Source of the DNA: Selaginella moellendorffii
Lineage: Eukaryota; Plantae; Lycopodiophyta
Direction of reading: 5' to 3'
DNA: 64,000 nucleotides
NCBI RefSeq assembly: GCF_000143415.4
Contig: NW_003314289.1
Coordinates: 1,048,787 to 1,112,786 of the forward strand
This document shows, piece after piece, positions 27,406-56,252 of this stretch. The notes beneath the pieces were generated by a model. It saw only the letters and a program-made list of their open reading frames with translations, was not told the origin of the DNA and did not search any database. The position numbers were made by a program, and so were the translations under genes. The stretch's first letter is position 1; each line of letters begins with the position of its first letter.

Positions 27406-28055
27406 TCAAACTTCACTTTCCAGGAAGGACTCGGGATTTGCCTGCTTCGCTTCCTTGTTATAGAAGAAAAAGGCCTCGGGATTAGCCTGCTTTACTTCCT
27501 TGTTATAGAAGACGAAGGACTCAGGATTTGCTTGCTTTTCTTCCCTATTTGCTTGCTTCGCTTCCTTGTTATAGAAGACGAAGGACTCTGGATTTGCCTG
27601 CTTTACTTCCTTGTTATAGAAGACGAAGGACTCGGAATTTGCCTGCTTCACTTCCTTGTTATAGAAGACGAAGGCCTCGGGATTAGCCTGCTTCACTTCC
27701 TTGTTATAGAAGACGAAGGACTCAGGATTTGCTTGCTTTTCTTCCTTATTTGCTTGCTTCGCTTCCTTGTTATAGAAGACGAAGGACTCGGGATTTGCCT
27801 GCTTCGCTTCCTTGTTATACAAGAGGATGGACTCGGGATTTGCCCGCTTCGTTTCCTTGTTATACAAGAGGATGGACTCGGGATTTGCCTGCTTTGCTTC
27901 ATTGGTGTACATTACCTCTCCAGGCACTTGCTTTTCATTGTCCTTGAGTGTACGTAGTGCTGCAGCTGCCTGAAGTACATATATCATTCAGAAAACTTAG
28001 AAGCAGAGATTGATCTCACCGTGAAACACAAGAGGACTGTAATGAGCCACGCCAT
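27406..28055 (-). CDS. Burpitide-type precursor peptide 1 (199 aa; exons 28055-28020 and 27969-27406); cores ILLY x2, FVFY x6, FFFY x1
   Basis: A 50-nt GT-AG intron joins signal peptide MAWLITVLLCFT to AAAALRTLKD. 45-bp in-frame repeats end in Tyr tetrapeptides. Divergent from the BURP gene. Confidence 0.88.
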
Positions 28056-28334
28056 GGTTTCTATGAAAATGTGGTGTTCTTGGATGTCCTTTTATAGTAA
28101 GGCTCTACTTTAAACTTCGTATTCTTATTATCTTAATACATTAGAGCTATCAAAATATCAACGCTGTATAGTAAAAGATCAGGATCTTCTTGGTCAGACG
28201 TCACTTTCCAGCAAGTTTTCAATGAAAATTTAAGTTCGTCCTTATCTCTTATACATAGAAAAATACTGAACAAGTGAAACATCACACCAACACAAGTTCA
28301 TATTATAATTATAGACTTTGCAATTCCAGAACTC

Positions 28335-29340
28335 ATGGCGGACACTTTGTTGGTTCTCATGTTCCTGGCATTATGTGTGGTAAGCTTCACGAATTTCATA
28401 ACTCTTCGAATCAAATCCAACTGATTGTGCTCTCCGCCAGGGATACTTGGAGGGATTCCAACTTCCACGCTCCATTCGTGAGAGGCTATCGCCCCTTGAC
28501 GACGCTTCAGCGCTGCACATCAAGCAGGAACTCCAAGCTTCCAGCAGGATATCACACGAGTCGTGCAAAGCCGCTGGTCTCTTGTGCGGTGATGAACATC
28601 ACTCCCTTCGTCAGCTTTTTCACCACCACCATGACCATCACGACAGGAGCGCCATGGAATCCTCCACTCGAGATCTCGCCCAGAGGACCTTCTTTCAGCT
28701 CAAGACGCTTGTTGGTGCCAAGAACATACAGTTGCCACCGCCACTGCGCTGGGACAACTCCATCCCTGTGAGTAAATTCCTTCATCCGCTACTAGAGCCT
28801 GTGCTTGCGTCCATGAATCTGTCCCAGCTCCTGTCCACCATGCACTTCTCGAGCCAGTCTCCATTCGCAGCGACGAGCAAGGATAGCCTGGAAATGTGCT
28901 CCTCCCACGGGGGGATCAAGCACGAGATCAAGGGTTGTCACGTCTCGGCAAAGTCCATCCTGGATCAGGCCTCTTCGACCCTCCACAAGCTCGAGTTGAA
29001 GTATGTGGCCAACACTCTGGAGTTTGATCCGAACGAACCATTCCAGGTGGTAGAGACGAGGGTGGTGGCTGCAGATGGATCTCTGGCCTGTCACCCCATG
29101 ACTTTCCCATTCGCCATCTTCATGTGCCACACAATACCGAACAGTCTCGTGTTGGAGGTGGATCTACTGAGAAGTTCTTCCAAGAACACGAAGCCTGCCA
29201 TGGTGAAAGTTCCTGCGGTTTGCCATATGGATACCTCTGATTTCGCGCCTTCTCATATCTCTTTTAAGATTCTTAACACCAGGCCCGGCGAGGGAGAGGT
29301 TTGTCACTGGCTTCCTACTTCTCATCTCGTGTGGTATTAA
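28335..29340 (+). CDS. Stand-alone BURP-domain protein 1 (314 aa; exons 28335-28379 and 28441-29340), candidate Cu-dependent peptide cyclase
   Basis: Signal peptide MADTLLVLMFLALCVG, FF start motif (RTFFQ), two Cys, CH-X10-CH-X30-CH-X25-CH-W and terminal HLVWY. No internal core repeats. Confidence 0.93.
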
Positions 29341-29849
29341 GCTCCAAGCCTGAATGCTAGAGTGAATATATAGTAAAGTTTGATCACAAGGAGAATAAGA
29401 ATTATGTGGCACTCCATGCCTCAACCGTCTTTTAATGAGCCAGCTTGAGACTGAGGATCTTCTTCGCAGCGAAAGAAGAAGACGTGATCGACTCCAAGCT
29501 GAGCGTCCACTAGATCTCTCATGAGGACCACAAAGGAGGGAGGGCCACAGTAATCCACATCTTTGTATGGGGCCGAGCTTGGGCCTGGTTAATAGCATTA
29601 TATTATGATTCTTCCCAGGTTTTACCAGAAGAAAGAATTGGGATTTGGCTGCTTGGATCCTTCCATACCAGAACAAAGCTTCAGGATTTGGCTTCCTTGC
29701 CATGCCAGAAGAACGACTCAGGTTTTGGGAACATAACATTTTGATAAAAAAAACCATGGCTTGGTTCATTACAGTGCAATCTCAGTCCTTGATTTCTAGC
29801 AACAACTTCAATGTACACCAAGAGAGCCTTAATATATTATACACTTTTC

Positions 29850-29985
29850 TCAACTTTGCAGATCTCAACTTTGCAGAATATCAACTTTTTAAAATCTCAA
29901 CAGATCTCAACTTTGCAGATCTCAACTTCGCAGAATATCAAGTTTTAAAATCTCAACAGATCTCATCAGAAATCAACTTTGCAGA
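29850..29985. repeat. 15-bp minisatellite (gatctcaactttgca), also at ~39265-39560, 49170-49305 and 58175-58395
   Basis: Direct tandem repeats whose copy number differs between units. Confidence 0.85.
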
Positions 29986-30164: not shown

Positions 30165-30915
30165 CGCCGGACACTTGTTTGGTTCTCGTATTATGTGTAT
30201 TAAGATTGACAACTCTTACAATCAAATCAAAACGATTGTTTACGAGATTCCATCTTCCACTATGACGCTTCAGCTCTGGCTATCAAGCAAGAAATCGAAG
30301 CTTCCGGCAGGATGTGACGTGAGTCAGTCTATTGTGCAGTGATGAACATCACTCCCTTTGTCAGAAAGTGAATCATTTTCTGTACATTGGACCCAAACAT
30401 TTTTCCACTTTGCACAACTCTGTGGGGATAATAGGTTTTTGCATATTTGAAGGTAAGAGAGAGTGATTCTAAAATTTGGACATTCTTCAAACCCCGAGTG
30501 CAACCATTTCTGAAAAATCCTAAAGAATATTGAACCAAATGATGACGTCATTATTTCGCATTTTTGATTCCGGACGAACGTTTGGTGCAAGGATAACCTG
30601 GCGATGTCCCAAGTCGCCGGGATCAAGCACCAGATCAAGTCTTATCACGTCTCCACAAAGTCCACTTCGACCCTCCCAAGCTCGAGTTGGACACTCCAAA
30701 CGAATTATTCTAGGTGGTGGTGGCTGCATCGCCTGTCACCCCATACTTTCCCATTCACCATCTTCATGTGGCACACGATACGGGAGAAGTTCTTCCAAGA
30801 AGACGAAGCCTGCCACGGTGAAAGCTCCAGTGGTTTGTCTTATGATTTCGAACCTTCTCACATCTCTTTTAAGATTCTGGCCCGGCGAGGTACTTCTCAT
30901 CTCGTGTGGTATTAA
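30165..30915 (+). pseudogene. Second, degenerate BURP copy in unit 1
   Basis: GIKHQIKSYHVS, FPFTIFMWHT, PSHISFKIL and TSHLVWY; CH motifs mutated, frameshifted. Confidence 0.85.
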
Positions 30916-31233
30916 GCTCCAAGCCTGCCAGGAAATGGAATGCATGATCGAAGCAACTACATAAAATTACCTTGAGCGGTAATCCCTTGTGCGTGTGAGA
31001 TCGATCACAAGGAAAATAAAGACGTCGTTGTTCGTTTATCTCTTTGGATAGTTCCAACGCTAATCGAAAATAGATTGTGGAATAGAGTTCTCTTAGAGAG
31101 CGGCTACAAGGCAAACAAGGATAAATTTCTTCCAAGAGGTATAAATGCTTGCGCGAACCAGTCGACACCCCGTAACAGAATTAGATACGTTGTTTCTGTC
31201 AAAGTTTCATTTCACTTATTTTAGATACTTGTT

Positions 31234-32570
31234 ACTACGTGTTTGATTTCTTCACCTGTGGAAAGAAAAAAAAGATCAAACAAAGAGAAAGAAGCGAACA
31301 TTCAGTACCTTCTTCAGGTATAACTTATGGAACTTGAGCGCTTTTTGGCACGCTCGGTATGCGTCTATCTTGCCGCTCATATTGTTCAGAGCCTGCGACG
31401 CATATTGTTACCAGGGAAAATGAGGAAAAAAGGAAAAGCATTAAACTGTTCCTCACCCTCACGACTTCGTCCAGGCCTTGAATTCTCTTTATAAACTTGG
31501 ATCGTAGCACCAAGATCCCGGCTACAAAGAAAACTGCCAGGGACGGATGCTCGTTGAGGGCTCTTGGCGATCCATACTTAATGTTCCGCTTTGCAAATCT
31601 ACCTCCAGCTCTATAGTCCGGCTGTACGTTGTCAATGTGACCATCTGGGGACACCATGTAGAGAATTTGAACTCGAAAGCCCACATCATCTACAAAGAAA
31701 GAAAAGCTCGCGTGGGCGAAAGAACATAAACATTTCACAACGGTTGGACTTACCTTCCAGAGGCTGAGCGTATCAACGAACGAAAACTCCCGGCGAAAGT
31801 TAACCATGAGCATTCGAAACGCAGAAACATAGTTGCTCCCTCCAAGTGCCTCTACAAAAAAAGGTCGGCAAAGACCTTCATCTTCGAAATCCTCACCTAT
31901 AGTTCTATGAAGCTTTGGATCGACTACTCGCATGGCAGCTGCGAGGAAGGAGAGCTCCTTCTGAACCCCCATCATCTTATTCGTGCACCTGAAATTTTCC
32001 CGCTTGCCAACATCAAACGTGATAAACTTGGTACTAAGCGATATAAAATCTTGAGAAGCGCTTTGCAGAAAACGTACCACTCGACGCATCAGGCACTTGA
32101 AGCACCAAAAGGCGTCAGCCTCGTCCGGGAAAAGGAGCACCATCGGCGAGCAAAGATCGCTCATACCTTGACAGTAGCCAACCTCCTCGTCGATCCAAGC
32201 GTACACGGCCAGGATGTCCCAGAGCTTTCCCAAGTTCTTGGGATCCTCGTAAAACTCTAAAACTCTATCCGTGCGAACTACATCCAGTCCTGCAAAGCGA
32301 AAGTTATGAAAAATAATCATACCAATCTGGTGGAGGAGGACTTTCCACTGGACAATCTTTGCGCTCGGCGATGGATCCAGCACTCCATTTATTGTCTGCT
32401 CTTCAATGGATTCTGCTAATACTTGGACAGAAAGTGAAAAGCCCGAAGCAAACAAAGAAGTAACCACCTGGATTATTCTCCTCCATGGAAACTCCGTCGG
32501 CATTCATTCGCGGCGATATCACAACTTCACCACTTCCAACGGCCGCATCCATTCGTTTACACACTCTACA
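31234..32570 (-). pseudogene. TBC/Rab-GAP gene, 5'-deleted copy
   Basis: LDVVRTDR, YCQGMSDLCSP, EADAFWCF and AFRMLMVNFRREFSF; the first exons seen in units 2 and 4 are missing. Confidence 0.82.
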
Positions 32571-32669
32571 CGCTCTAAACTCTCGTTAAGTAATCGTACG
32601 AATATGCTCCATTCTTTGCTCCGGTTCGAATCGCGTAGCTAACGTTTAATTTTTTGTAACTATGTTGCC

Positions 32670-34270
32670 ATGGACAAAGCCCGATCGTGCAAAAGCCTCC
32701 CAATGGCCCAGGAGATCCACAAACGCATCCAGGCGAATCCACCACTCCACGAGAGCCTCTTTGTCTACTGTTTAACCAGTTTGGCAGTCTCGTAAATGCC
32801 CGAAGCGTGTTTGATCGCATCGAGAACAAGGATGTTTTGTCGCTGGTTCTTATGATCTGCGGCTACTCTCGCAGCGGGCAAGTTTCCAATGCAAAAGCCA
32901 TCTTTGATTCCATGCCCGAAAAGAATCTTACAAGCTGGAACGCTATGATGGCAGCATATGCCAAGAATGGGTATATGGACGAGGCAGAACTACTGTTTCA
33001 AGAGATGCCGTTTCACGATGCCGTGTCATGCAACACGCTCATAGCTGCACACTCGCAAAGAGGGAATTTGGATACTGCGAAGGAGATCTTTGATGACATG
33101 CTTTTTAAAACTCTACCATGCTGGAATGCCATGCTATCTGCATATGCCACAGGCTGGCATCTTGTACAAGCAAGACAGACATTTCACTCGATGCCTGCTC
33201 GAAATCTGATCTCTTGGACATTATTCTTAAACGCACTAATCATGGAGGATGATCTTCAAATGACTAGAAGTGTTTTAGCGAAATGCCCTGCTGGAATCTG
33301 TTTGCCTGTAACTCAGTACTTTCCGCATATGCCCGAAAGGGGAATCTTCTCGAAGCCATGCTAATCTTTGACACAATGCTCGAGAGGGATATAATCACTT
33401 ACACAAACATGCTGGAAGCTTTCATCTACAACGGTTGCCTCTTTGAAGCCAGCAATTTGTTCTCGCGGATGCCATAGCGGGATCTTGTGGCCTACACCGT
33501 AATGGAATCGGCCTATGCTCAAAAGGGCGAGCTCGAGAGAGCCGAGGCCATCTTCAACTCCATGCCGCAGCGTGATCTCGTCGCTTGGAACGCCATGATC
33601 CGGGGCTTACTCCCAACACGGCTGAGTCGAGCAAGCAAAGTTTCTCTTTGATTCCATGGCCGAGAGAAACTTGGTCTTCTGGACCTCAATGCTCACGGCT
33701 TACACAATAAGTGGCTACTTCTCGCAAGCAGAGCAAAACTCCGTCTCGTGGAATGCCATCCTTTGCATGTATGCTCAGCACGGCCATTTGAGCTCCGCAA
33801 GGAAGATTTTCGATGCCATGCCCGAGCAAGGAGTGGTATCATGGAGCGCCATGCTCGCTGCCCACGTGAGAAACTTGTCCTCTTCCCGTGCTCTCGAGCT
33901 CTTTGACGAGATGAAAGCTTTGCATTGTCCCGACGAAGCTTGCTTCTTCTCGGCTATGGTTTCGTTTGGGCAGCAAGGCTGCATCTCCAGAGCCAAGTCT
34001 TGTTTTGGTTCCATGGTGGCCGACTATGAAGTGGCGCCATCAAAGCAGCACTACTGTTGCATGGTGGATTTGCTCGTTCGATCTGGGAGAAGTTTGGAGG
34101 CCGAGGAACTTGTGTTGGCCATGCCTTTTGAGCCCAGTAACTTGGAATGGTCGTGCTTGCTGCGTGAAAGAAACTCCAGTTCGATGTTAATCACCAGAGG
34201 CAAGCATGCTTTAAGATCAAGTTCCTCGGATGGAGCGGTTTACGTGCTGCTTGCCAATGCATTAACTTGA
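32670..34270 (+). pseudogene. PLS-class PPR pseudogene
   Basis: Same sequence family as 61723-63387 but with frameshifts and a premature TAG at 33475-33477. Confidence 0.88.
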
Positions 34271-36370
34271 AAGCTAATATGAAACCTGCACATTAAAAAG
34301 ATGGGGCTTTATTTCACAATGGCACTTGAGTAAGTTTTGGTTTTGCTATTGTGCCTCTATGTATCCTTCAGTTTGGGTTGCCACACGGAAGAGGGCTGTG
34401 GTCGTTCTATGAGGCTGATGACCCCAATGCTTCTCCGCTTGCTCTTGCTCAATGGAGGTTTTTGTTTAAGATAGACGCATCTATACTAGTAATACTAGCA
34501 CCTTTATACAAAAAGATGCAAAGAAGCTAGTTATTAATATTAGTGCTTGCTTCATTGTTTCAAAAACTTGAGCGTCCACTAGATCTCTACCACAAAGGAT
34601 GGCCATCCCAGCGAAGTGGTGGCAACGAACAAAGTCTAGGAATGCTGGCACCTCCAATCCATCCGTGGACACCAAAGCTCTTGGTTAATAATCATCAAAG
34701 TAAATCCGTTTATACCCTCATTTATGATAAGCTTTTGCTCTTATACCAAAAGAAAAGAATTGGGATTTGGCTGCTCATACCAGAACAAAGCATTGGGATT
34801 GGCTTCCGTGCCAAACCATACATTTGAGAACATAACCTTAGTCGATGTTCTAACTTGTCTGAATGATATATGTACTTCAGGCATCTACAGCACTTCAAAT
34901 GCTCAAGGAGAAAGGGGCCACACTGCAATCTCAGTCCTTGATTTCTAGCAACAAGGTAATGTACGCATAGAAAAACGAATACACACCTTTTGCTCTTGTA
35001 CCACAATGGAGCCTTTCTCGCATGCACACCACAGCCCTCGGCTTCGCTCACCTCAAACCCATATTTCAATTACCACTACCCACCCTGCCCCAGGCGTGAG
35101 ATCGGGGCTGGGTTCTTTATTTTTATTATTATAGATTACTATTTTATTAAATTTTCTTAAATATCAAGAATGAACTAGCAAGAGGGATATACAATGAGAT
35201 GAAGTTTAAGAAATGTCACTCTTAAACTTTGTTTCTAATCAGTGTTTAATGTTAATTTTGGCAACTTTCTTGTTGAGGTACCTGTTGCCATCTTTTTGGA
35301 TTTTCATAAAACCGCAACGAGGAGTTAGGGGCTTGGCATTTAGCAAGCCAAGTCAAAAGGAGCCAAATTTCCTCTGTCTTTTAAGTTTTGTAGCACCCCT
35401 TTTGCATTTGCATTAGTTGTGGCTAAATGCAACACTTTACGGCTAGGCTGAATGCCCTAATGGCGCCGGTGGGCATTTTAGGCCCAGGTGGCGTGCGCTA
35501 GAGCCGTCTATTCCGCTATTTGCGCCACCTCTTGGTCACCAAGCCCTAATAAAAATTTAAAATTTAAGAAAAAGTTCATAGTGTATTTTCCATTTGACAG
35601 AATATTCTGTCAACAGTGTTGACTTGGCTCCCTATACCATGAATTGCAACTCACACTTTTTACATACAAAATTCATATTATCCTTTAAGTTAAAAGGATC
35701 CACATTGACAAATCTGTAACAGCCTCAATGGAGGAGAACTCTCACAAGGGTGACACCATTCCCCATCATTTCTCCTAATACACAATAGTTAGCATTTTAA
35801 CATTAATGTCCAATAGTAAGCAAATGTCTCAATCTAAAAAAGTCATTAAGTGCTACTTTACATATGCTAAATAGTATATTAGAATATATATTTAAAGACA
35901 AACCACTGTGATATATCAGAAACTAAATTGCATAAAAAATAATAAAATGAAAGCAAACCACGTTCACAACAAAATATTAATGCTAATGCCTCTTTTTGTT
36001 AATTAAATTATTTGATTTTAAAATTGTGCTAGAGTTTATGGTTCACTTGCTCCTAAGAAAAATGTTACTTTTTACGTGAAGATGTCTACATATTTATCTA
36101 TGAAGAATGAGATTAGAAATAGATAGAAATGTTTCCTTATGAGATTATAGGGTATTATTTGAATGCTTACAAATAAAATATAAGCTTGATTCTGTTTATA
36201 AGTTTTCAAGAAAACTTTTTCTGATTTCAAAGGGTTTTTTTTAATTGTATTTTATTTGTGTATTTTATTGTAAGGCTCTACTTTAAACTTCATATTTTTA
36301 TTATCTCAATACAGTAGAGCTTTGCAAAGTATCAGCTATATAATAAGAGATCCATAAAGGATTTTCTTAG

Positions 36371-37272
36371 TCAAACTTCACTTTCCAGGACGGACTCGGG
36401 ATTTGCCTGCTTCGCTTCCTTGTTATAGAAGACGAAGGACTCTGGATTTGCCTGCTTCACTTCCTTGTTATAGAAGACAAAGGCCTCGGGATTAGCCTGC
36501 TTTACTTCCTTGTTATAGAAGACGAAGGACTCAGGATTTGCTTGCTTTTCTTCCCTATTTGCTTGCTTCACTTCCTTGTTATAGAAGACGAAGGCCTCGG
36601 GATTTGCCTGCTTCGCTTCCTTGTTATAAAAGACAAAGGACTCAGGATTTGCCTGCTTCACTTCCTTGTTATAGAAGACGAAGGCCTCGGGATTAGCCTG
36701 CTTCACTTCCTTGTTATAGAAGACGAAGGCCTCGGGATTTGCCCGCTTCTGCTTCACTTCCTTGTTATAGAAGACGAAGGACTCAGGATTTGCTTGCTTT
36801 TCTTCCTTATTTGCTTGCTTCGCTTCCTTGTTATAGAAGACGAAGGACTCGGGATTTGCCTGCTTGGCTTCCTTGTTATAGAAGACGAAGGACTCGGGAT
36901 TTGCCTGCTTTACTTCCTTGTTATAGAAGACGAAGGCCTCGGGATTTGCCTGCTTCACTTCCTTGTTATAGAAGACGAAGGCCTCGGGATTTGCCTGCTT
37001 CACTTCCTTGTTATAGAAGACGAAGGACTCAGGATTTGCTTGCTTTTCTTCCTTATTTGCTTGCTTCGTTTCCTTGTTATAGAAGACGAAGGACTCGGGA
37101 TTTGCCTGCTTTGCTTCATTGGTGTACATTACCTCTCCAGGCACTTGCTTTTCATTGTCCTTGAGTGTACGTAGTGCTGCAGCTGCCTGAAGTACATATA
37201 TCATTCAGAAAAGTTAGAAGCAGAGATTGATCTCACCGTGAAAAACAAGAAGACTGTAATGAGCCACGCCAT
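36371..37272 (-). CDS. Burpitide-type precursor peptide 2 (283 aa; exons 37272-37237 and 37186-36371); FVFY x14
   Basis: Signal peptide MAWLITVFLFFTAAAA after splicing a 50-nt intron, upstream TATAAA on -, and 14 in-frame repeats. Confidence 0.9.
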
Positions 37273-37398
37273 GGTTTCTATCAAAATGTGGTGTTCTCGG
37301 AAGAAAAACTTAGCAGCGCGCTCGGGAAGAGGCAACTAAGGCAGCGGCAGTGGTGGAGAAGGAGGAGCTGTTCCTGGAGCCAGACTCGATTCCATGTC

Positions 37399-37408
37399 CT
37401 TTTATAGT
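37399..37408 (-). promoter_or_regulatory. TATA box of the precursor gene (CTATAAAAG on -), conserved in all four units
   Basis: cttttatag on + lies ~130 bp upstream of the precursor ATG in units 2-4 and ~40 bp upstream in unit 1, which has a UTR deletion. Confidence 0.55.
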
Positions 37409-37712
37409 AAAGCTCTTCTTTAAACTTCGTATTCTTATTATCTTAATACATTAGAGCTTTGCAATTAGTAAGAGATGTGTGTAGTAACGCTGTATAGTAA
37501 GAGATCCTTGTCTCCTAGCATAAAGGATCTTGGTCAAACGTCACTTTCCAGCAAAGTTGTTAATGAAAATTTCGTCCTTATCTCTTATACATAGAAAAAT
37601 ACTGAACAAGTGGAAACGTCACACTAGCACAAGTTCATATTATACATAGAAAAATACTGAACAAGTGGCACAAGTTCATATTATAATTATAGACTTTGCA
37701 ATTCCAGAACCT

Positions 37713-38719
37713 ATGGCGGACACTTTGTTGGTTCTCATGTTCCTGGCATTATGTGTGGTAAGCTTCACGAATTTCATGACTCTTTCGAATCAAATCCAAC
37801 TGATTGTGCTCTCCGCCAGGGGTACTTGGAGGGATTCCAACTTCCGCGCTCCATTCGTGAGAGGCTATCGCCCCTTGACGACGCTTCAGCGCTGCACATC
37901 AAGCAGGAACTCCAAGCTTCCAGCAGGATATCACACGAGTCGTGCAAAGCCGCTGGTCTCTTGTGCGGTGATGAACATCACTCCCTTCGTCAGCTCTTTC
38001 ACCACCACCATGACCATCACGACAGGAGCGCCATGGAATCCTCCACTCGAGATCTCGCCGAGAGGACCTTCTTTCAGCTCAAGACGCTTGTTGGTGCCAA
38101 GAACATACAGTTGCCACCGCCACTGCGTTGGGACAACTCCATCCCTGTGAGTAAATTCCTTCATCCGCTGCTAGAGCCTGTGCTTGCGTCCATGAATCTG
38201 TCCCAGCTCCTGTCCACCATGCACTTCTCGGGCCAGTCTCCATTCGCAGCGACGAGCAAGGATAGCCTGGAAATGTGCTCCTCCCACGGGGGGATCAAGC
38301 ACGAGATCAAGGCTTGTCACGTCTCGGCAAAGTCCATCCTGGATCAGGCCTCTTCGACCCTCCACAAGCTCGAGTTGAAGTATGTGGCCAACACTCTGGA
38401 GTTTGATCCGAACGAACCATTCCAGGTGGTAGAGACGAGGGTGGTGGCTGCAGATGGATCTCTGGCCTGTCACCCCATGACTTTCCCATTCGCCATCTTC
38501 ATGTGCCACACAATACCGAACAGTCTCGTGTTGGAGGTCGATCTACTGAGAAGTTCTTCCAAGAACACGAAGCCTGCCATGGTGAAAGTTCCTGCGGTTT
38601 GCCATATGGATACCTCTGATTTCGCGCCTTCTCATATCTCTTTTAAGATTCTTAACACCAGGCCGGGCGAGGGAGAGGTTTGTCACTGGCTTCCTACTTC
38701 TCATCTCGTGTGGTATTAA
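37713..38719 (+). CDS. Stand-alone BURP-domain protein 2 (314 aa; exons 37713-37757 and 37820-38719)
   Basis: Intact signal exon, GT-AG intron, four CH motifs and terminal W; near-identical to copy 1. Confidence 0.93.
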
Positions 38720-39749
38720 GCTCCAAGCCTGAATGCTAGAGTGAATATATAGTAAAGTTTGATCACAAGGAGAATAAGAATTATGTGGCACTCCATGCCT
38801 CAACCGTCTTTTAACGAGCCAGCTTGAGACTGAGGATCTTCTTCGCAGCGAAAGAAGAAGACGTGATCGACTCCAAGCTGAGCGTCCACTAGATCTCTCA
38901 TGAGGACCACAAAGGAGGGAGGGCCACAGTATTCCACATTTTTGTACGGGGCCGAGCTTGTGGGGCATCCGTGGAGACCATAGTTTGGAGCCAGATTGTT
39001 ATCCAAAGCTCCTGGCTAATAGCATTATATTGTGATGCTTCCCAAAGAAAGAATTGGGATTTGGCTGCTTGGCATCCTTCCATACCGGAATAAAGCTTCA
39101 GGATTTGCCTTCCTTGCCATACCAGAAGAAAGACTCAGGTTTTGGGAACATAACATTTTGATAAAAAAAACCATGGCTTGGTTCATTACAGTGCAATCTC
39201 AGTCCTTGATTTCTAGCAACAACTTCAATGTACACCAAGAAAGCCTTAATATATTGTACACGTTTCTCAACTTTGCAGAACATCAACTTTTTAAAAGCTC
39301 AACAGATTTCAACCTTGCAGGTCTCAACTTTGCAGATCTCAACTTTTCTTTGCAGGTCTCAACTTTGCAGGTCTCAACTTTGCAGAATATTAACTTTTTA
39401 AAAGCTCAACAGACGTCAGCCTTGCAGGTCTCAACTTTTCAGATCTCAACTTTGCAGGTCTCAACTTTGCAGAATATTAACTTTTTAAAAGCTCAACAGA
39501 CGTCAGCCTTGCAGGTCTCTACTTTTCAGATCTCAACTTTGCAGGTCTCAACTTTGCAGAATATTAACGCTGTAAATTAAGAGATCCTTGTCTTCTAGCA
39601 TAAGCGCAGCTGGTGTCATTCAATCATCCATGTGAAACATCACTTTCCAGCAAGTTTTCAATGACAATTTTGCAGACAAAGTTTAACAACGACGTCGACT
39701 CGTGCTCTACTTGTTTGGTATATTTCTACTTTAACTATAGACTTGGACT

Positions 39750-40588
39750 CACGGTGTTTGGTTCTCGTATTATGTGTATTTAGATTGACAACTCTTACAA
39801 TCAAATCAAAACGATTGTTCACGAGATTCCAGCTTCCACTCTCAATCCATGAGACCCTTACTACCAGGCAAGAAATCAAAGCTTCCCGCAGGATGTGACG
39901 TGAGTCGTGCAAAGCCGCCGGTCTATTGTGTGGTGATGAACATCACTCCCTTCATCAGCTCTTTCACCAGCCAGATTCAGCGAAAGTGAATCATTTTTTG
40001 TACATTGGACGCAAACATTTTTCCACTTTGCACAACTCTGTGGGGATAATAGGTTTTTGCACATTTGAAGGTAAGAATGCACGCTTGAGAGAGTGATTTT
40101 AAAATTTGGACATTCTTCAAACCCTGAGTGCAACCATTTCTGAAAAATCCTAAAGAATATTCTCCCACTGACTTTCATTTTGCTCAACACAACCAAATGA
40201 TGACGTCATTATTTTGCCTTTTTGATTCCGGACGAACGTGCAAGGATAACCTGGCGATATCCCAAGTCGCCGGGATCAAGCACCAGATCAAGTCTTATCA
40301 CATCTCCACAAAGTCCACTTCGACCCTTCCCAAGCTCGAGTTGGACACTCCAAAGGAACCATTCTAGGTGGTGGAGATGAAGGTGGTGGCTGCATCATGA
40401 CTTTCCCATTCGCCATCTTCATGTGGCACACGATACGGGAGAAGTTCTTCCAAGAAGACGAAGCCTGCCACGGTAAAAGCTCCAGCGGTTTGTCTCATGA
40501 TTTCGAACCTTCTCACATCTCTTTTAAGATTCTCAACAAGGTAGAGGTCTGTCACTGGCTTCCTACTTCTCATCTCGTGTGGTATTAA
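39750..40588 (+). pseudogene. Degenerate second BURP copy, unit 2
   Basis: MTFPFAIFMWHT...VCHWLPTSHLVWY with frameshifts. Confidence 0.85.
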
Positions 40589-40931
40589 GCTTCAAGCCTG
40601 CCAGGAAATGGAATGCATGATCGAAGCAACTACATAAAATTACCTTGAGTGGTAATCCCTTGTGAGTGTGAGATCGATCACAAGGAAAATAAAGACGTCG
40701 CTGTTCGTTTATCTCTTTGGATAGTTCCAACGCTAATCGAAAATAGATTGTGGAATAGAGTTCTCTTAGAGAGCGGCTACAAGGCAAACAAGGATAAATT
40801 TCTTCCGAGGTATAAATGCTTGCGCGAACCAGTCGACATCCCGTAACAGAATTAGATACGAGATTTGTCCCAAAACTCACTGACCTTTGTTTCTGTCAAA
40901 GTTTCATTTCACTTATTTTAGATACTTGTTA

Positions 40932-46691: not shown

Positions 46692-47254
46692 TCAAACGTC
46701 ACTTTCGAGGAAGGATTGGGGATTTGCTTGCTTCGCTTCCTTGTTATACAAGAGGATGGACTCGGGATTTGCCTGCTTCACTTCCTCGTTATACAAGAGG
46801 ATGGACTCGGGATTTCCCTGCTTCGCTTCCTCGTTATACAAGAGGATGGACTCGGGATTTGCCTGCTTCGCTTCCTCGTGATACAAGAGGATGGACTCGG
46901 GATTTGCCTGCTTCGCTTCCTTGTGATACAAGAGGATGGACTCGGGATTTGCCGGCTTCGCTTCCTTGTCATACAAGAGGATGGACTCGGGATTTGCCTG
47001 CTTCGCTTCCTTGTCATACAAGAGGATGGACTCGGGATTTGCCTGCTTCGCTTCCTTGTCATACAAGAGGATGGACTCGGGATTTGCCTGCTTTGCTTCA
47101 TTGGTGTACATTACCTCTCCAGGCACTTGCTTTTCATTGTCCTTGAGTGTACGTAGTGCTGCAGCTGCCTGAAGTACATATATCATTCAGAAAACTTAGA
47201 AGCAGAGATTGATCTCACCGTGAAAAACAAGAAGACTGTAATGAGCCACGCCAT
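46692..47254 (-). CDS. Burpitide-type precursor peptide 3 (170 aa; exons 47254-47219 and 47168-46692); ILLY x8
   Basis: Spliced signal peptide and 8 exact 15-aa repeats; the residue after Tyr is D, H or N. Confidence 0.9.
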
Positions 47255-47608
47255 GGTTTCTATCAAAATGTGGTGTTCTCAGAAGAAAAACTTAGCAGCG
47301 CGCTCACGGGAAGAGGCAACTAAGGCGGCGGCAGTGGTGGAGAAGGAGGAGCTGTTCCTGGAGCCAGACTCGATTCCATGTCCTTTTATAGTAAAGCTCT
47401 AATTCTTATTATCTTAATACATTAGAGCTTTGCAAAATATCAACGCTGTATAGAAAGAGATCCTTGTCTTCTAGCATAAAGGATCCAGCAAGTTGTCAAT
47501 GAAAATTTAAATTCGTCCTTATCTTTTATATATAGAAAAATACTGAACAAGTGGAAACATCACACCAGAGTTCATATTATAATTATAAACTTTGCAATTC
47601 CAGAACCC

Positions 47609-48627
47609 ATGGCAGACACTTTGTTGGTTCTCATGTTCCTGGCATTATGTGTGGTAAGCTTCACGAATTTCATGACTCTTTCGAATCAAATCCAACTGAT
47701 TGTGCTCTTCGCCAGGGATACTTGGAGGGATTCCAACTTCCACGCTCCATTCGTGAGAGGCTATCGCCCCTTGACGACGCTTCAGCGCTGCACATCAAGC
47801 AGGAACTCCAAGCTTCCAGCAGGATATCACACGAGTCGTGCAAAGCCGCTGGTCTCTTGTGCGGTGATGAACATCACTCCCTTCGTCAGCTCTTTCACCA
47901 CCACCATGACCATCACGACAGGAGCGCCATGGAATCCTCCACTCGAGATCTCGCCCAGAGGACCTTCTTTCAGCTCAAGACGCTTGTTGGTGCCAAGAAC
48001 ATACAGTTGCCACCGCCACTGCGCTGGGACAACTCCATCCCTGTGAGTAAATTCCTTCATCCGCTGCTAGAGCCTGTGCTTGCGTCCATGAATCTGTCCC
48101 AGCTCCTGTCCACCATGCGCTTCTCGAGCCAGTCTCCATTCGCAGCGACGAGCAAGGATAGCCTGGAAATGTGCTCCTCCCACGGGGGGATCAAGCACGA
48201 GATCAAGGCTTGTCACGTCTCGGCAAAGTCCATCCTGGATCAGGCCTCTTCGACCCTCCACAAGCTCGAGTTGAAGTATGTGGCCAACACTCTGGAGTTT
48301 GATCCGAACGAACCATTCCAGGTGGTAGAGACGAGGGTGGTGGCTGCAGATGGATCTCTGGCCTGTCACCCCATGACTTTCCCATTCGCCATCTTCATGT
48401 GCCACACAATACCGAACAGTCTCGTGTTGGAGGTGGATCTACTGAGAAGTTCTTCCAAGAACACGAAGCCTGCCATGGTGAAAGTTCCTGCGGTTTGCCA
48501 TATGGATACCTCTGATTTCGCGCTTCTCATATCTCTTTTAAGATTCTTAACACCAGGCCGGGCGAGGGAGAGGTTTGTCACTGGCTTCCTACTTCTCATC
48601 TCGTGTGGTATTAAGCTCCAAGCCTGA
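47609..48627 (+). pseudogene. BURP-domain protein 3 with a 1-nt deletion near 48522 that removes the 4th CH motif
   Basis: ttcgcgcttctc here versus ttcgcgccttctc in the other copies; reads DFALLISLL... instead of DFAPSHISF...VCHW. Could be a sequencing error. Confidence 0.8.
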
Positions 48628-49484
48628 ATGCTAGAGTGAATATATAGTAAAGTTTGATCACAAGGAGAATAAGAATTATGTGGCACTCCATGCCTCAACC
48701 GTCTTTTAATGAGCCAGCTTGAGACTGAAGATCTTCTTCGCAGCGAAAGAAGAAGACGTGATCGACTCCAAGCTGAGCGTCCACTAGATCTTTCATGAGG
48801 ACCACAAAGGAGGGAGGGCCACAGTAATCCACATCTTTGTATGGGGCCGAGCTTGGGGGGCATCCGTGGACACCATAGTTTGGAGCCAGATTGTTATCCA
48901 AAGGTCCTGGTTAATAGCATTATATTATGATTCTTCCCAGGTTTTACCAGAAGAAAGAATTGGGATTTGGCTGCTTGGCATCCTTCCATACCAGAACAAA
49001 GCTTCAGGATTTGGCTTCCTTGCCATGCCAGAAGAAAGGCTCAGGTTTTGGGAACATAACATTTTGATAAAAAAAACCATGGCTTGGTTCATTACAGTGC
49101 AATCTCAGTCCTTGATTTCTAGCAACAACTTCAATGTACACCAAGAGAGCCTTAATATATTATACACTTTTCTCAACTTTGCAGATCTCAACTTTGCAGA
49201 ATATCAACTTTTTAAAATCTCAACAGATCTCAACTTTGCAGATCTCAACTTCGCAGAATATCAAGTTTTAAAATCTCAACAGATCTCATCAGAAATCAAC
49301 TTTGCAGACAACGCTGTAAATTAAGAGATCCTTGTCTTCTAGCATAAATCGCAACTGGTGTCATTCCATCATCCACGTGAAACATCACTCTCCAGCAAGT
49401 TTTCAATGACAATTTTGCAGACAAAGTTTAACAATGACGTCGTACTTGTTTTGGTATATTTCTACTTTAACTATAGACTTGGAC

Positions 49485-50294
49485 TCACGCCGGACACTCG
49501 TTTGGTTCTCGTATTATGTGTATTAAGATTGACAACTCTTACAATCAAATCAAAACGATTGTTCACGAGATTCCATCTTCCACTCTCAATCCGTGAGGCC
49601 CTTATGACGCTTCAGCTCTGGCTATCAAGCAAGAAATCGAAGCTTCCGGCAGGATGTGACGTGAGTCGTGCAAAGCTTCCAGTCTATTGTGTGGTGACAT
49701 TAGCTCTTTCACCAGCCAGATTCAGCGAAAGTGAATAATTTTCTGTACATTGGACCCAAACATTTTTCCACTTTGCACAACTCTGTGGGGATAATAGGTT
49801 TTTGCATATTTGAAGGTAAGAGAGAGTGATTTTAAAATTTGGACATTCTTCAAACCCTGAGTGCAACCATTCCTAGAGAATATTCTCCCACTGATTTTTC
49901 TTAACACAACCAAATGACGACGTCATTATTTCGCCTTTTTGATTCCGGACGAACGTTTGGTGCAAGGATAACCTGGCGATGTCCCAAGTCGCCGACCAGA
50001 TCAAGTCTTATCACGTCTCCACAAAGTCCACTTCGACCCTTCCCAAGCTCGAGTTGGTGGAGACGAAGGTGGTGGCTGCATCGCCTGTCACCCCATGACT
50101 TTCCCATTCGCCATCTTCATGTGGCACACGATACGGGAGAAGGTGTTCCAAGAAGACGAAGCCACGGTGAAAGCTCCAGCGGTTTGTCTTATGATTTCGA
50201 ACCTTCTCACATCTCTTTTCAGATTCTCAACACCAGGCCCAGCGTGGTAGAGGTCTGTCACTGGCTTCTTACTTCTCATCTCGTGTGGTATTAA
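49485..50294 (+). pseudogene. Degenerate second BURP copy, unit 3
   Basis: Ends EPSHISFQILNTRPSVVEVCHWLLTSHLVWY; upstream frameshifts. Confidence 0.85.
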
Positions 50295-50615: not shown

Positions 50616-52236
50616 CTATGTGTTCGATTTCTTCACCTGTGGAAAGGAAAAAAAGATCAAACAAAGAGAAAGAAGCGAACATTCAGTACCTTCTTCAGGT
50701 ATAACTTATGGAACTTGAGCGCTTTTTGGCACGCTCGGTATGCGTCTATCTTGCCGCTCATATCGTTCAGAGCCTGCGACGTATATTGTTACCAGGGAAA
50801 ATGAGGAAAAAAGGAAAGCATTAAACTGTTCCTCACCCTCACGACTTCGTCCAGGCCTTGAATTCTCTTTATAAACTTGGATCGTAGCAGCACCAAGATC
50901 CGGATGCTCGTTGAGGGCTCTTGCCGATCCATACCTCCAGCTCTATAGTCCGGCTGTACGTTGTCAATGTGACCATCCGGGGACTCCATGTAGAGAATTT
51001 GAAGGTCGGGATGGTACTCGAAAGCCCACATCATCTACAAAGAAAGAAAAGCTCGCGTGAGCGAAAGAACATAAACATTTGACAACGGTTGAACTTACCT
51101 CCCAGAGGCTGAGCGTATCAACAAACGAAAACTCCCGGCGAAAGTTAACCATGAGCATTCGAAACGCAAAAATATAGTTGCTCCCTCCAAGTGCCTCTAC
51201 AGAAAAAGGTCGGCAAACATCTTCATCTTCGAAATCCTCACCTAGAGTTCTATGAAGCTTTGGATCGATTACTCGCATGGCAGCTGCGAGGAAGGAGAGC
51301 TCCTTCTGAACCCCCATCATCTTATTCGTGCACCTGAAATTTTCCCGCTTGCCAACATCAAACGTGATAAAGTTCAATGAACGGTACTAAGTGATAGAAA
51401 ATCTTGAGAAGCGCTTTGCAAAAAACGTACCACTCGACGCATCAGGGACTTGAAGCACCAAAAGGCGTCAGCCTCGTCCGGGAAAAGGAGCACCATCGGC
51501 GAGCAAAGATCGCTCATACCTTGACAGTAGCCAACCTCCTCGTCGATCCAAGCGTACACTCCAGAGCTTTCCCAAGTTCTTGGGATCCTCGTAAAACTCT
51601 AAAACTCTATCCGTGCGAACTACATCCAGTCCTGCAAAGCGAAAGTGAGCTCTCTCTCTAGCACGCGAAACAGAAAAATAATCACACCAATCTGGTGGAG
51701 AAGAGCTTTCCACTGGACAATCTTTGCCCTCGGCGCTGGATCCAGCACAACTTTTCAATGGATTCTGCTAATACTTGGACTGAAAGTGAAAAGCCCGAAG
51801 CAAACAAAGAACTAAGCACCTGGATTATTTTCCTCCATGGGAACTCCGTCGGCATTCATTCGCGGCGATATCACAACTTCGCCACTTCCAACGGCCGCAT
51901 CCATTCGCTTTCACTCGGCCTTGAGCTTCAAATATTTGTCACTGTAAAAACCAACGCGGTTTCTCTCGCAGATAAAATCCAATCGATAAAACAGGCCAAA
52001 GTATCTACCGTCGCGATTGACGAAGCTCTTCCCTTTCGGCAGCATTGCTGCCGGGGGAGTAAACACCCAAAAGAAACTCCCAGACGTGAGCGCGAATCTC
52101 CGACGCAACGCCCTACAGGAAAGAAGAAGAGATTTCGCTACTGGAAATGCAGCACAAGATTTACCCCTCTTTCGATGTGCCGAAGAACTCGCTTCACATT
52201 GAGCCGCCCTTGCGCATCAAACGCAGCCCGCCATTT
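50616..52236 (-). pseudogene. TBC/Rab-GAP pseudogene copy 3
   Basis: TBC motifs present, with internal deletions and loss of the first exon. Confidence 0.82.
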
Positions 52237-52256
52237 CCACATTGAACTATGTTCCC

Positions 52257-53815
52257 ATGGACAAAGCCCGGGAGCTCATTCGATCGTGCAAAAGCCTTCC
52301 AATGGCCCAGGAGATCCACAAACGCATCCAGGCGAATCCACCACTCCCACCACACGAGAGCCTCTTTGTCTCCAACAATCTCCTCGCACTGTTTAACCAG
52401 TTTGGCAGCCTCGCAAATGCCCGAAGCGTCTTTGATCGCATCGAAAACAAGGATGTTTTCTCGCTGGTTCTTATGATCTGCGGCTACTCTCGCAGCGGGC
52501 AAGTTTCCATGGAAAAGCCATCTTTGATTCCGTACCCGAGAAGAATCTTACAAGCTGGAACGCTATGGTGGCAGCATATGCCAAGAATGGGTATCTGGAC
52601 GAGGCAGAACTTTTGTTTCAAGAGATGCCATTTCATGATGCCGTGTCATGCAATACGCTCATAGCTGCACACTCGCAAAGAGGGCATTTGGATACTGCGA
52701 AGGAGATCTTTGATGACATGCTTTTTAAAACTCTACCATGCTGGAATGCCATGCTATCTGCATATGCCACAGCTGGCATCTTGTACGAGCAAGACAGACA
52801 TTTCACTCGATGCCTGCTCGAAATCTGATCTCTTGGACATCATTCTTAAACGCACTAATCATGGAGGAAGATCTTCAAATGACTAGAAAGTGCTGGAAGC
52901 TCTCATCCAAAACGGTTGCCTCTTTGAAGCCAGCAATTTGTTCTCGCGGATGCCACAGCGGGATCTTGTGGCCTACACCGTAATGCAATCGGCCTATGTT
53001 CAAAACGGCGAGCTCGAGAGAGCCGTGGCCATCTTCACCTCCATGCCGCAGCGTGATCTCGTCGCTTGGAACGCCATGATCGGGGTTACTCCCAACACGA
53101 CCTAGTCGAGCAAGCAAAGCTTTTCTTTGATTCCATGGCCGAGAGAACTGGACCTCAATGCTCACGGCTTACACAATATGTGGCTACTTCTCGCAAGCAA
53201 AGCTCGTCTTTCTCGACATGTCCGAGCAAAACTCCGTCTCGTGGAATGCCATCCTTTGCATGTATGCTCAGCACGGCCATTTGAGCTCTGCAAGGAAGAT
53301 TTTCGATGCCATGCCCGAGCAAGGAGTGGTATCATGGAGCGCCATGCTCGCTGCCCAGGTAAGAAACTTGTCCTCTTCCCATGCTCTCGAGCTCTTTGAC
53401 GAGATGAAAGCTTTGCATTGTCCCGACGAAGCTAGCTTCTTCTCAGCTATGGTTTCGTTTGGGCAGCATCTCAAAAAAGCTTAATTAACTTTGCCATTTT
53501 GATGAACAACTTAAATTCACAAAAATGACTTTTTTGGGAAGAAATTCTTCTCCCAAATCGAACGAGCAAATCCACCATGCAAGAGTAGTGCTGCTTTGAT
53601 GGCGCCACTTCATAGTCGGCCACCATGGAACCAAAGCAATGGAGGCCGAGGAACTTGTGTTTGCCATGCCTTTTAAGCCCAGTAACTTGGAATGGTCGTG
53701 CTTGCTGCGTGAAAGAAACTCCAGTTCGACGTTAATCACCAGAGGCAAGCATGCTTTAAGATCAAGTTCCTCGGATGGAGCGGTTTACGTGCTGCTTGCC
53801 AATAGATTAACTTGA
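52257..53815 (+). pseudogene. PLS-class PPR pseudogene with deletions and an internal inversion
   Basis: Multiple frameshifts; ~53550-53640 is the reverse complement of PPR coding sequence. Confidence 0.88.
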
Positions 53816-55959
53816 AAGCTCTGTACATTAAAAAGATGTCTCATTTCAAGGGCTTTATTTCACAATGGCACTTGAGTAAGTTTTGGTTTTGCTATTGTGC
53901 TTCTATGTCTCCTTCAGTTTGGGTTGCCACATGGAAGAGGGCTGTGGTCGTTCTACGAGGCTGATGACCCCAATGCTTCTCCGCTTGCTCTTGCTCATGG
54001 AGGTTTTTGTTCAAGATAGACGCATCTATACTAGCAATACTAGCTTTGTACAAAAAGATCCAAAGAAGCTAGTTATTAATATTAGTGCTTGCTTCATTGT
54101 TTCAAAAAGTTGAGCGTCCACTAGATCTCTACCGCAAAGGAGGGCCATCCCAGCGAAGTGGTGGCAATGAACAAAGTCTAGGAATGCTGGCACCTCCAAT
54201 CCATCCGTGGACACCAAAGCTCTTGGTTAATAATCATCAAAGTAAATCCGTTTATACCCTCATTTATGATAAGCTTTTGCTCCTATACCAAAAGAAAGAA
54301 TCGGGATTTGGCTGCTCATACCAGAACAAAGATTGGCTTCCTTGCCATACCATACATTTGAGAACATAACCTTGGTTCATTATAGTCGATGTTCTAACTT
54401 GTCTGAATGATATATGTACTTCAGGCATCTACAGCACTTCAAATGTTCAAGGACAAAGGGGCCACACTGCAATCTCAGTCCTTGATTTCTAGCAACAAGG
54501 TAATGTATGCATAGAAAAACGAATACACACCTTTTGGTCTTGTACCACAATGGAGCCTTTCTCGCATGTACACCACAGCCCTCGGCTTCGCTCACCTCAA
54601 ACCCATATGTCAATTACCACTACCCACCCTGCCCATCGGGGCTGGGCTCTTTATTTTTATTATTATAGATTACTATTTTATTAAATTTTCTTAAATATCA
54701 AGAATGTATAATAAAAGATCCTCTTGCTATATAAAAACATCAGTTCAATGAGACAAAGTTTAAGAAATGTCACTCTTAAACTTTGTTTCTAATCAGTTTT
54801 AACGTTAATTGCATTTATTAAAAAGGCAACCTTCTTGTTGAGGTACCCCTCTCTCCCATTGTTGCCATCTTTTTGGATTTTCATAAAACCGCTATGAGGA
54901 GTTAGGGGCTTGGCGTTTAACAAGCCAAGTCAAAAGGAGCCAAATTTCCTCTGTCTTTTAAGTTTTGTAGCGCCCCTTTTACACCCCAAGCATTTGCATT
55001 GGTTGTGGCTAAATGCAACACTTTACGGCTAGGCTGATTTAGGGCCTAACTGCATTTTAGGCCCAGGTGGCGTGCGCTAGAGCCCCGGCTATTTGGCCCC
55101 CAACAGCGCCCGCCCTAATTATAAATTAAGAAAAAGTTCATAGTGTATTTTCCATTTAACAGAATATTCGGTCAACAGGGCTCGCTACACTTTTTACATA
55201 CAAAATCCATATTATCCTTTAAGTTAAAAGGATCCACATTGACAAATCTGTAACAACCTCAATGGAGGAGGACTCTCACAAGGGAGACACCATTCCCCAT
55301 CATTTCTCCTAATACACAATAGTTAGCATTTTAACATTAATGTCCAGTAGTATGCAAAATGTCTCAATCTAAATAAGTCATTAGGTGCTACTTTACATAT
55401 GCTAAATAGTATATTAGAATATATATTTAAAGACAAACCACTGTGATATATCAGAAACTAAATTGCATAAAAAAATAATAAAATGAAAGCAAACCACGTT
55501 CACAACAAAATATTAATACTAATGCCTTTTTTTTTAATTAAATTATTTTATTTTTAAATTGTGCTAGAGTTTATGGTTCACTTGCTCCTAAGAAAAATTT
55601 TACTTTCTGCATGAAGATGTCCACATATTTGTCTATGAAGAATGAGATTAGAAATAGATAGAAATGTTTCCTTATGAGATTATAGGGTATTATTTCAATG
55701 CTTACAAATAAAATATAAGCTTGATTCTGTTTATAATTTTTCAAGAAAACCAATTAATGACATGGTTAATTTAAACTGAATTATGTTTAAATGTTAAGAG
55801 GATTTAAACACATTTTTCCTGATTTGAAAGTTTCTTTTATTGTATCTTATTTGTGTTTTCCGATTGCAAGGCTCTACTTTAAACTTCATATTCTTATTAT
55901 CTTAATACATTAGAGCTTTGTAAAATATCAACGCTGTATAGCATAAAGGATATTCTTAG

Positions 55960-56252
55960 TCAAACGTCACTTTCCAGGAAGGACTCGGGATTTGCCTGCT
56001 TGGCTTCCTTGTTATAGAAGACGAAGGACTCGGGATTTGCCTGCTTCGCTTCCTTGTTATAGAAGAGGAAGGACTCGGGATTTGCCTGCTTCGCTTCATT
56101 GGTGTACATTACCTCTCCAGGCACTTGCTTTTCATTGTCCTTGAGTGTACGTAGTGCTGCAGCTGCCTGAAGTACATATATCATTCAGAAAGGTTAGAAG
56201 CAGAGATTGATCTCACCGTGAAAAACAAGAAGACTGTAATGAGCCACGCCAT
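55960..56252 (-). CDS. Burpitide-type precursor peptide 4 (80 aa; exons 56252-56217 and 56166-55960); cores FLFY and FVFY
   Basis: Same signal exon and intron as copies 1-3, only two repeats, ends FLESDV. Confidence 0.87.

Follow-up and report, generated by a model that had tools for sequence, protein, structure and literature searches.

A candidate split burpitide cluster with valine-rich tetrapeptide cores in the lycophyte Selaginella moellendorffii

What does a lycophyte make from long arrays of short, tyrosine-ending peptides, and where would a ring be closed when the residue expected to carry the cross-link is valine? These questions are raised by a 64,000-nucleotide stretch of the Selaginella moellendorffii genome (contig NW_003314289.1, positions 1,048,787 to 1,112,786 of the forward strand), which is called the window here and supplies all coordinates unless another sequence is named. 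An earlier note, made from the sequence alone, had pointed to 33 tetrapeptide cores in this window and had predicted specific cyclopeptide alkaloids from them, dominated by an unusual Phe-Val-Phe-Tyr (FVFY) core. We consider it probable that the locus is a tandemly amplified cluster of four split burpitide units, in which precursor and cyclase are separate genes for cyclopeptide-alkaloid-type, ribosomally made peptides with post-translational modifications (RiPPs), and that it works as proposed below.

A six-frame motif scan of the window, together with the translations of its open reading frames (ORFs), recovered the 33 cores with the composition first reported, namely FVFY 21, ILLY 10, FFFY 1 and FLFY 1. 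Every core lies on the minus strand, within 27460-56070, and the six-frame scan found none elsewhere in the window. The arrays have a 45-bp (15-amino-acid) period, overlaid by higher-order periods of 111, 156-162 and 201 bp, and they are therefore tandem repeats rather than chance occurrences. Each core array is exon 2 of a small two-exon gene, and the span 27406-56252 given in the earlier note runs exactly from the stop codon of precursor gene A1 to the start codon of precursor gene A4. The four precursor genes are as follows.

27406-28055, minus strand: precursor gene A1, 199 amino acids; exon 1 at 28020-28055 (MAWLITVLLCFT), intron at 27970-28019, exon 2 at 27406-27969; two ILLY, six FVFY and one FFFY core; a 199-amino-acid GenBank product at the same place.
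36371-37272, minus strand: precursor gene A2, 283 amino acids; intron at 37187-37236; 14 FVFY cores; a 283-amino-acid GenBank product here.
46692-47254, minus strand: precursor gene A3, 170 amino acids; intron at 47169-47218; eight ILLY cores with identical core codons; a 170-amino-acid GenBank product here.
55960-56252, minus strand: precursor gene A4, 80 amino acids; intron at 56167-56216, skipped by contigs of four runs from four studies; one FLFY and one FVFY core.

In each precursor gene, MAWLITVFLFFT is encoded by exon 1; a 50-nucleotide intron with GT..AG ends comes next, and exon 2 then starts with AAAALRTLKDNEKQVPGEVMYTNEAKQANPES and closes with a half repeat that lacks Tyr (NPESFLESEV or variants thereof). 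The encoded protein consists of a signal peptide (MAWLITVFLFFTAAAA, called by eye), a leader of approximately 30 amino acids, and 2 to 14 repeats of an 11-amino-acid spacer with a four-residue core ending in Tyr. The spacers are indeed near-invariant, with the consensus NKE[A/V]KQANPE[S/A]; the exceptions are four insertions of 7 amino acids, either NKEEKQA or NREEKQA, and a single insertion of KR, and the ORF translations show one FVFY core preceded by NSES. Plus-strand ORFs that cross the arrays (for example 36542-37174) were rejected as antisense artefacts, as the intron reads CT..AC on that strand.

How large is the unit on which processing would act? The ten ILLY cores are identical in nucleotides, and 19 of the 21 FVFY cores have one nucleotide sequence in common, with the other two differing solely by synonymous TTT codons. 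The residues around the cores are less constant. Specifically, in the eight-core ILLY array of A3 the residue after Tyr (+1) is N, D or H and spacer residues vary as well, and in the FVFY arrays the residue at −1 alternates between S and A. Because these two positions vary around invariant cores, the four-residue unit that had been proposed appears to be the one under constraint, and it is favoured over SFVFY or FVFYN. We consider it very unlikely that a unit of more than four residues is released, such as PE[S/A]FVFY or [S/A]FVFY after cleavage behind an Asn at −4, or that the locus yields a cross-linked repeat protein that is never excised and acts as a modified secreted protein. This Asn is conserved and never stands directly before the core, as an Asn does in Ceanothus americanus (PMC10107690) and in the Selaginella kraussiana cyclase SkrBURP, and for many DUF2775 repeat proteins Lima et al. 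treat it as an open question whether they are ever released as small molecules (PMC10107690). However, both ideas sit poorly with the variable flanks of constant cores, and the products known from Selaginella are cut back to the macrocycle and a single N-terminal residue (selanine B; ILLY as a monocycle, PMC10349150).

Opposite each precursor gene is a BURP gene. The two are arranged head-to-head on opposite strands in four of four units, with 279-440 bp between their start codons, as follows.

28335-29340, plus strand: split BURP cyclase gene B1, 314 amino acids; intron at 28380-28440; intact, with four CH motifs; identical to XP_024536415.
37713-38719, plus strand: split BURP cyclase gene B2, 314 amino acids; intron at 37758-37819; Pfam BURP match at E 1e-42; identical to XP_024536417; nearest relative SkrBURP.
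47609-48627, plus strand: BURP gene B3; a 1-nucleotide deletion near 48523 causes a frameshift by which the fourth CH motif is lost together with the C-terminal W.
56623-57629, plus strand: split BURP cyclase gene B4, 314 amino acids; intron at 56668-56729, skipped by contigs of three runs; Pfam BURP match at E 4e-43.
56253-56622: divergent promoter and 5′ untranslated region (UTR) between the start codons of A4 and B4, with equivalents at 28056-28334, 37273-37712 and 47255-47608.

Exon 1 of the BURP genes encodes MADTLLVLMFLALCV and is followed by an intron of 61-62 nucleotides, to give a product of 314 amino acids. B1, B2 and B4 are intact and at least 98% identical to one another in pairwise comparison, and B4 matches XP_024536414, which is annotated from an earlier ATG. 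The BURP domain (PF03181) matches, at the E values listed for B2 and B4, cover profile positions 2-215 of 216. The three intact proteins share the arrangement CH-X10-CH-X30-CH-X25-CH, which represents the four Cys-His motifs of the copper site, and these motifs align with those of the AhyBURP structure 8SY2, the sole solved relative. In B3, the deletion at 48523 converts GCGCCTTCT into GCGCTTCT within a copy that is otherwise near-identical, and GenBank still lists a 314-amino-acid B3 product; B3 is probably inactive, unless the deletion reflects an error of assembly. Overall, the gene models agree with GenBank product lengths of 199, 283, 170 and 314 amino acids on GL377593.1 (S. moellendorffii v1.0), to which the window is identical and where the precursors are annotated without a function.

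The nearest relative of these proteins is found within the same genus. When 1.84 billion representatives were searched exhaustively with HMMER, SkrBURP of S. kraussiana (QXY82431) was the best match outside the species (39% identity, E 8e-40), with every other match outside the species at E 1e-29 or weaker. In a maximum-likelihood tree of 73 BURP domains, obtained by a quick, short search with no bootstraps, the BURP proteins of the window group with SkrBURP (Shimodaira-Hasegawa approximate likelihood ratio test, SH-aLRT, 92) and then with a fused lyciumin precursor of S. uncinata (91), apart from a large angiosperm clade. SkrBURP is a proven cyclase (PMC11253845), and the window proteins, judged from this closest proven enzyme, would carry out copper- and O2-dependent side-chain cross-linking.

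Evidence that the paired genes are expressed comes from contigs of four public runs, belonging to four studies, that were aligned to 55900-57700 (unit 4 only, 1,801 nucleotides). The intron of A4 is skipped exactly in all four runs and that of B4 in three of the four, in both cases with GT..AG ends; both genes of the pair are thus spliced in three runs and the precursor in all of them. Each spliced contig is confined to one gene of the pair, there is no depth between the two 5′ ends, and spliced precursor contigs extend to at least 56366. Because both introns are skipped exactly, the contigs derive from spliced mRNA and confirm both gene models for unit 4, whose exon and intron sequences are shared by the remaining three units. 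In addition, contigs with an NPEA variant of the spacer are present in four of four runs, and since this variant is confined to the neighbours of FVFY or FFFY cores in A1 and A2, FVFY-bearing messages are made. A fused gene is ruled out by the opposite strands and the separate transcripts. The assignment of the cores to BURP cyclases in the earlier note is thus upheld, as the precursors are stand-alone, transcribed and paired with BURP genes.

Within the divergent promoter of unit 4, approximately 75 nucleotides of the precursor 3′ UTR are duplicated (55880-55950 and 56400-56494), and this duplication produces the 'goes back 541' joints seen in contigs of three runs.

What, then, would be made from these precursors? 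SkrBURP joins the Tyr oxygen to the β-carbon of Leu2 in VLFY, ILLY and FLLY cores (PMC11253845, PMC10349150, PMC12871766), and two eudicot enzymes act likewise, CamB1 closing ILLY and FFFY from Tyr4 to residue 2 and ArbB2 closing LLLY in this manner (PMC12186524). Indeed, all four-residue cores characterised to date, which comprise the SkrBURP monocycles, ILLY, FFFY and ILWY with CamB1, and LLLY with ArbB2, are linked from Tyr4 to residue 2 (PMC12186524, PMC10349150). The linkage on which the original prediction was based therefore has precedent both in SkrBURP and in a eudicot cyclase, CamB1 (PMC12871766, PMC12186524), and an ether between the Tyr phenol oxygen and the β-carbon of residue 2 is predicted for the products of the window. 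By this analogy, ILLY, FLFY and FFFY should yield 14-membered, Leu- or Phe-linked rings of known type.

The proposal that ILLY corresponds to the frangulanine skeleton also stands. Frangulanine is built from a side-chain Ile, a β-oxy-Leu and a ring Leu (PMC6155665), which is the amino acid set of ILLY, and the mass of 501.3435 computed for N,N-dimethyl, decarboxylated cyclo-ILLY agrees with that of frangulanine. However, the further step to alkaloids as the products is not supported. The Selaginella products known so far retain the C-terminal carboxylate, and the window contains no decarboxylase or methyltransferase gene; carboxylate peptides of the selanine type are the more likely products when compared with styrylamine alkaloids. 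Among the ORFs of the 64-kb window, none for a methyltransferase or a 2-oxoglutarate (2OG) oxygenase was apparent, and such genes could lie elsewhere.

The FVFY core poses a distinct chemical problem. On general chemical grounds, hydrogen abstraction from a tertiary C-H bond is no more difficult than from the secondary C-H of Leu, and the obstacle would be the formation of the hindered C-O bond. Hymenocardine contains β-oxy-Val. We know of no natural cyclase for a tertiary ether at the Val β-carbon, and of no precursor or cyclase for the natural Val-linked cyclopeptide alkaloids. Ring closure of FVFY at residue 2 would need such an ether. This linkage is rare, yet not unprecedented, because the β-carbons of Val and Ile are listed among the ether sites of natural cyclopeptide alkaloids (review PMC11253845, section 3.6.3.4) and the ether of ceanothine D is described as tertiary (PMC5909672). 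The earlier claim of unusual regiochemistry is thus right in that Val at position 2 is unusual, but the linkage itself is not new, as the Val β-carbon is already a listed site (PMC11253845).

From homology to SkrBURP and the biochemistry of ArbB2 and CamB1, we infer the catalytic steps, the site of linkage, the processing and the end products as follows. A bidirectional promoter in each unit would drive a secreted precursor from the minus strand and a secreted, stand-alone BURP copper cyclase from the plus strand. In the secretory pathway, the cyclase would bind the spacer, and its CH-motif copper site with O2 would abstract the β-hydrogen of core residue 2. This β-carbon would then be joined to the phenol oxygen of Tyr4 to form a 14-membered ring. 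Finally, the cyclic tetrapeptides would be released by proteases, and genes located elsewhere might then provide N-methylation. FVFY, which is the most frequent core of the window haplotype, would in this way acquire a tertiary alkyl-aryl ether at the Val β-carbon.

Several observations weigh against this reading. One of the four cyclase copies, B3, is frameshifted, and genes for a methyltransferase, a protease and a decarboxylase are absent from the window. A core with Val at position 2 is absent from SkrBURP. When Leu2 was replaced with Val or Ile, ArbB2 gave less product, in two peaks of unknown linkage; FVWGY, the Val case, is the sole reported enzymatic test of Val at this position (PMC12186524). 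Because of this lower yield and the two peaks, a Val core may be a poor or ambiguous substrate. Contig depth is no measure of expression level, and the precursors cannot be ranked by it; moreover, the nature of the runs as RNA was guessed, with the spliced joints as the argument for RNA. Also, no precursor homologue was detected outside S. moellendorffii by searches that include ones blind to the species' own products. Specifically, word-indexed protein searches with the whole of exon 2 or with the leader region gave no match, but they equally missed the annotated products of S. moellendorffii and are uninformative on distribution.

The two ArbB2 products from a Val2 core, which are isobaric (PMC12186524), count in favour of a closure of FVFY at a site other than Val. 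The likeliest such closure would run from Tyr4-O to the benzylic β-carbon of Phe1 and create a 17-membered i/i-3 ring, comparable to arabipeptin A and the second ring of selanine A; Phe3 is another candidate site. SkrBURP, the nearest relative, makes an i-2 ring plus an i-3 ring onto the β-carbon of an aromatic residue (PMC11253845), and on chemical grounds a benzylic C-H would be easily abstracted and less hindered than a tertiary centre. Nevertheless, we regard closure away from Val as unlikely, given that Tyr4 is linked to residue 2 in all characterised four-residue cores (PMC12186524, PMC10349150) and that near-identical cyclases would also have to handle ILLY, in which residue 1 is not aromatic.

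A second haplotype of this region, GL377587.1, is 99% identical in the flank and differs in its core sets. The approximately 21-kb stretch that was compared carries two precursor/BURP units and the same BURP pseudogene copy as the window, versus four units in the window, and the region may extend further. Its precursor genes are as follows.

8993-9499 and 17952-18514 of the compared GL377587.1 stretch: precursor genes with a core mix that differs from that of the window; one has ILLY twice, FFLY, FVFY five times and FFFY, the other ILLY seven times and FFLY.

Over these two genes the totals are ILLY 9, FFLY 2, FVFY 5 and FFFY 1, and FFLY is absent from the window. Because the core sets differ between haplotypes with a flank that is 99% identical, the core library changes fast, via unequal exchange. 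FVFY is present on both haplotypes, and its numerical dominance is due to the 14-core gene A2 of the window haplotype. The predominance of FVFY in the original prediction consequently holds for the window haplotype (21 of 33 cores) but not for the other (FVFY 5 versus ILLY 9).

These haplotype differences invite the question of whether FVFY matters at all. It might be a poor or uncyclised substrate, with the 14-copy array being a product of recent, haplotype-specific unequal crossing-over with little output, and the real products might come from ILLY, FLFY, FFLY and FFFY. The nucleotide sequence shared by 19 of the 21 FVFY cores, higher-order periods of a kind typical of recent amplification, the ILLY-rich genes of the other haplotype and the weaker turnover of a Val2 core by ArbB2 (PMC12186524) are all consistent with this. 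However, the core occurs on both haplotypes, and because the two deviating FVFY cores differ by synonymous changes only, the peptide itself has been retained. Transcripts with the FVFY-linked NPEA spacer occur in four of four runs, and Val-linked ethers are found in nature (PMC11253845). In light of these points, an inert FVFY array seems improbable to us.

How does this cluster compare with known burpitide systems? The closest is SkrBURP with selanines A and B from S. kraussiana (QXY82431), which comes from the same genus, has the closest BURP domain and is the tree partner. Its cores likewise follow the pattern x-[L]-[L/F]-Y, with ILLY and FLFY among them, and form the 14-membered ring from Tyr4-O to the β-carbon of residue 2. 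In SkrBURP, however, the cores are fused ahead of the BURP domain in one protein, whereas the window has separate genes on opposite strands. SkrBURP cores also extend to xLxYP(S)Y, which permits a second ring, whereas the window cores have four residues and no second Tyr. Position 2 is Val in most window cores and in none of SkrBURP. The window spacer looks unrelated to SkrBURP, as BLASTP of the precursor against the N-terminal repeat domain of SkrBURP gave no alignment; a shared repeat origin can be neither claimed nor excluded.

The arrangement of genes resembles that of eudicot cassettes, namely ArbA2/ArbB2 (Coffea arabica), CamA/CamB1 (Ceanothus americanus) and ZjuPrec/ZjuBURP (Ziziphus jujuba). 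These likewise have a stand-alone precursor with a signal peptide and a repeated recognition sequence with a Tyr-ending core, and their precursor and BURP genes are likewise clustered in tandem arrays. C. americanus also has ILLY and FFFY cores, which are closed from Tyr4 to residue 2 (PMC10107690, PMC12186524). The precursors themselves are different. None of the three precursors compared with PF10950 (DUF2775, the ST protein family) gave a match up to E 10, and the window precursors appear to act like members of this family without belonging to it by sequence. Weak Pfam matches of the precursors to DUF1829, DUF4811 and other families were dismissed as noise, being below or near the cut-off in repetitive sequence. 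The 11-amino-acid spacer of the window is without the eudicot Phe at −7, the nearest equivalent being an Ala/Val at −8 between Glu and Lys, and there is neither an Asn directly before the core nor a His following it. Furthermore, the window cyclases group with the fused ones of Selaginella and outside the large angiosperm clade, to which a Cinchona protein belongs, for instance, and the host is a lycophyte. The natural cyclopeptide alkaloids linked through Val or Ile β-carbons carry the linkage predicted for cyclo-FVFY (PMC11253845; ceanothine D, PMC5909672), but they come from eudicots and are styrylamine or ketone-type end products, unlike the peptides predicted here.

Judged by its genes, the locus is thus a split burpitide cluster in a lycophyte, which shares its logic and its enzyme family with the eudicot cassettes and is set apart by its precursor family, its lineage and its Val-rich core set. 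Eudicots are known to have split burpitide cassettes (PMC10107690), and Selaginella a fused pathway. A screen of 700 transcriptomes was without Selaginella, and it found nothing in two lycopods. In the literature searched, coverage of which is incomplete, neither this locus nor any split burpitide pathway of a lycophyte was found to be described; plantiSMASH 2.0 may list the cluster automatically. More tentatively, we raise the possibility, which we hold to be less likely than not, that a stand-alone BURP protein naturally and efficiently makes the tertiary ether at the Val β-carbon, with cyclo-FVFY as a major product, and that the split pathway of the lycophyte, with a precursor unrelated to DUF2775, had an origin separate from that of eudicots, through fission of a SkrBURP-like gene or fusion with one.

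Self-comparison of the window shows that the four tandem units are approximately 9.5-10 kb long and that each carries a precursor, a BURP gene, a BURP relic, pieces of a RabGAP-TBC gene and pentatricopeptide repeat (PPR) ORFs. The decayed BURP copies identified are as follows.

24450-25600, plus strand: fifth BURP copy, a pseudogene approximately 82-84% identical to the others and frameshifted, as seen by self-BLAST and fragmented ORFs.
30604-30915, plus strand: BURP C-terminus relic inside unit 1, with ORF translations ending ...SHISFKIL...SHLVWY.
49914-50294: similar BURP C-terminus relic inside unit 3.

The copy at 24450-25600 is taken to be a dead relic, as B3 possibly is too; this reading is rejected for A1 to A4, B1, B2 and B4 because of their intact frames, with the spliced contigs covering unit 4. 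Beside the fifth BURP copy, at 25914-26225 on the plus strand, there is a decayed stretch that resembles the start of precursor exon 2 (MIYVLQASTAIQMFKDKG); it has the same orientation as that copy and is not head-to-head with it. Minisatellites of 57, 87 and 107 nucleotides lie downstream of each BURP gene (29848-29965, 39265-39568 and 49171-49288), and their copy number differs by unit. RabGAP-TBC pieces on the minus strand and PLS-type PPR ORFs on the plus strand occur in each unit (30530-34300, 40190-44560, 50790-53490 and 59300-63500). Because several of these are interrupted, much of this co-amplified cargo looks to be decaying. Upstream of the cluster are a DUF26 (Stress-antifung) ORF at 6674-7123 (plus strand), a DEAD-box helicase with a Gly-rich tail at 8489-9938 (minus strand), a Fic/DOC-domain ORF at 11057-12163 (plus strand) and a reverse-transcriptase fragment at 15310-15705 (plus strand), none of which resembles a tailoring gene.

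Burpitide cyclases are wanted as biocatalysts in the making of strained cyclophane peptides, and among their variables the cross-link site at position 2 is the least explored. The locus offers a natural, transcribed system in a model lycophyte in which a near-invariant cyclase stands beside cores with Leu, Phe and mostly Val at this position, so that regiochemistry and turnover could be compared directly with a few short peptides. It also represents a split precursor/cyclase arrangement outside seed plants, next to a fused relative in the same genus, with implications for the way in which RiPP pathways switch between fused and split forms. If the Val β-carbon ether is indeed made efficiently, the cyclase would be the first known enzyme for such a hindered linkage.

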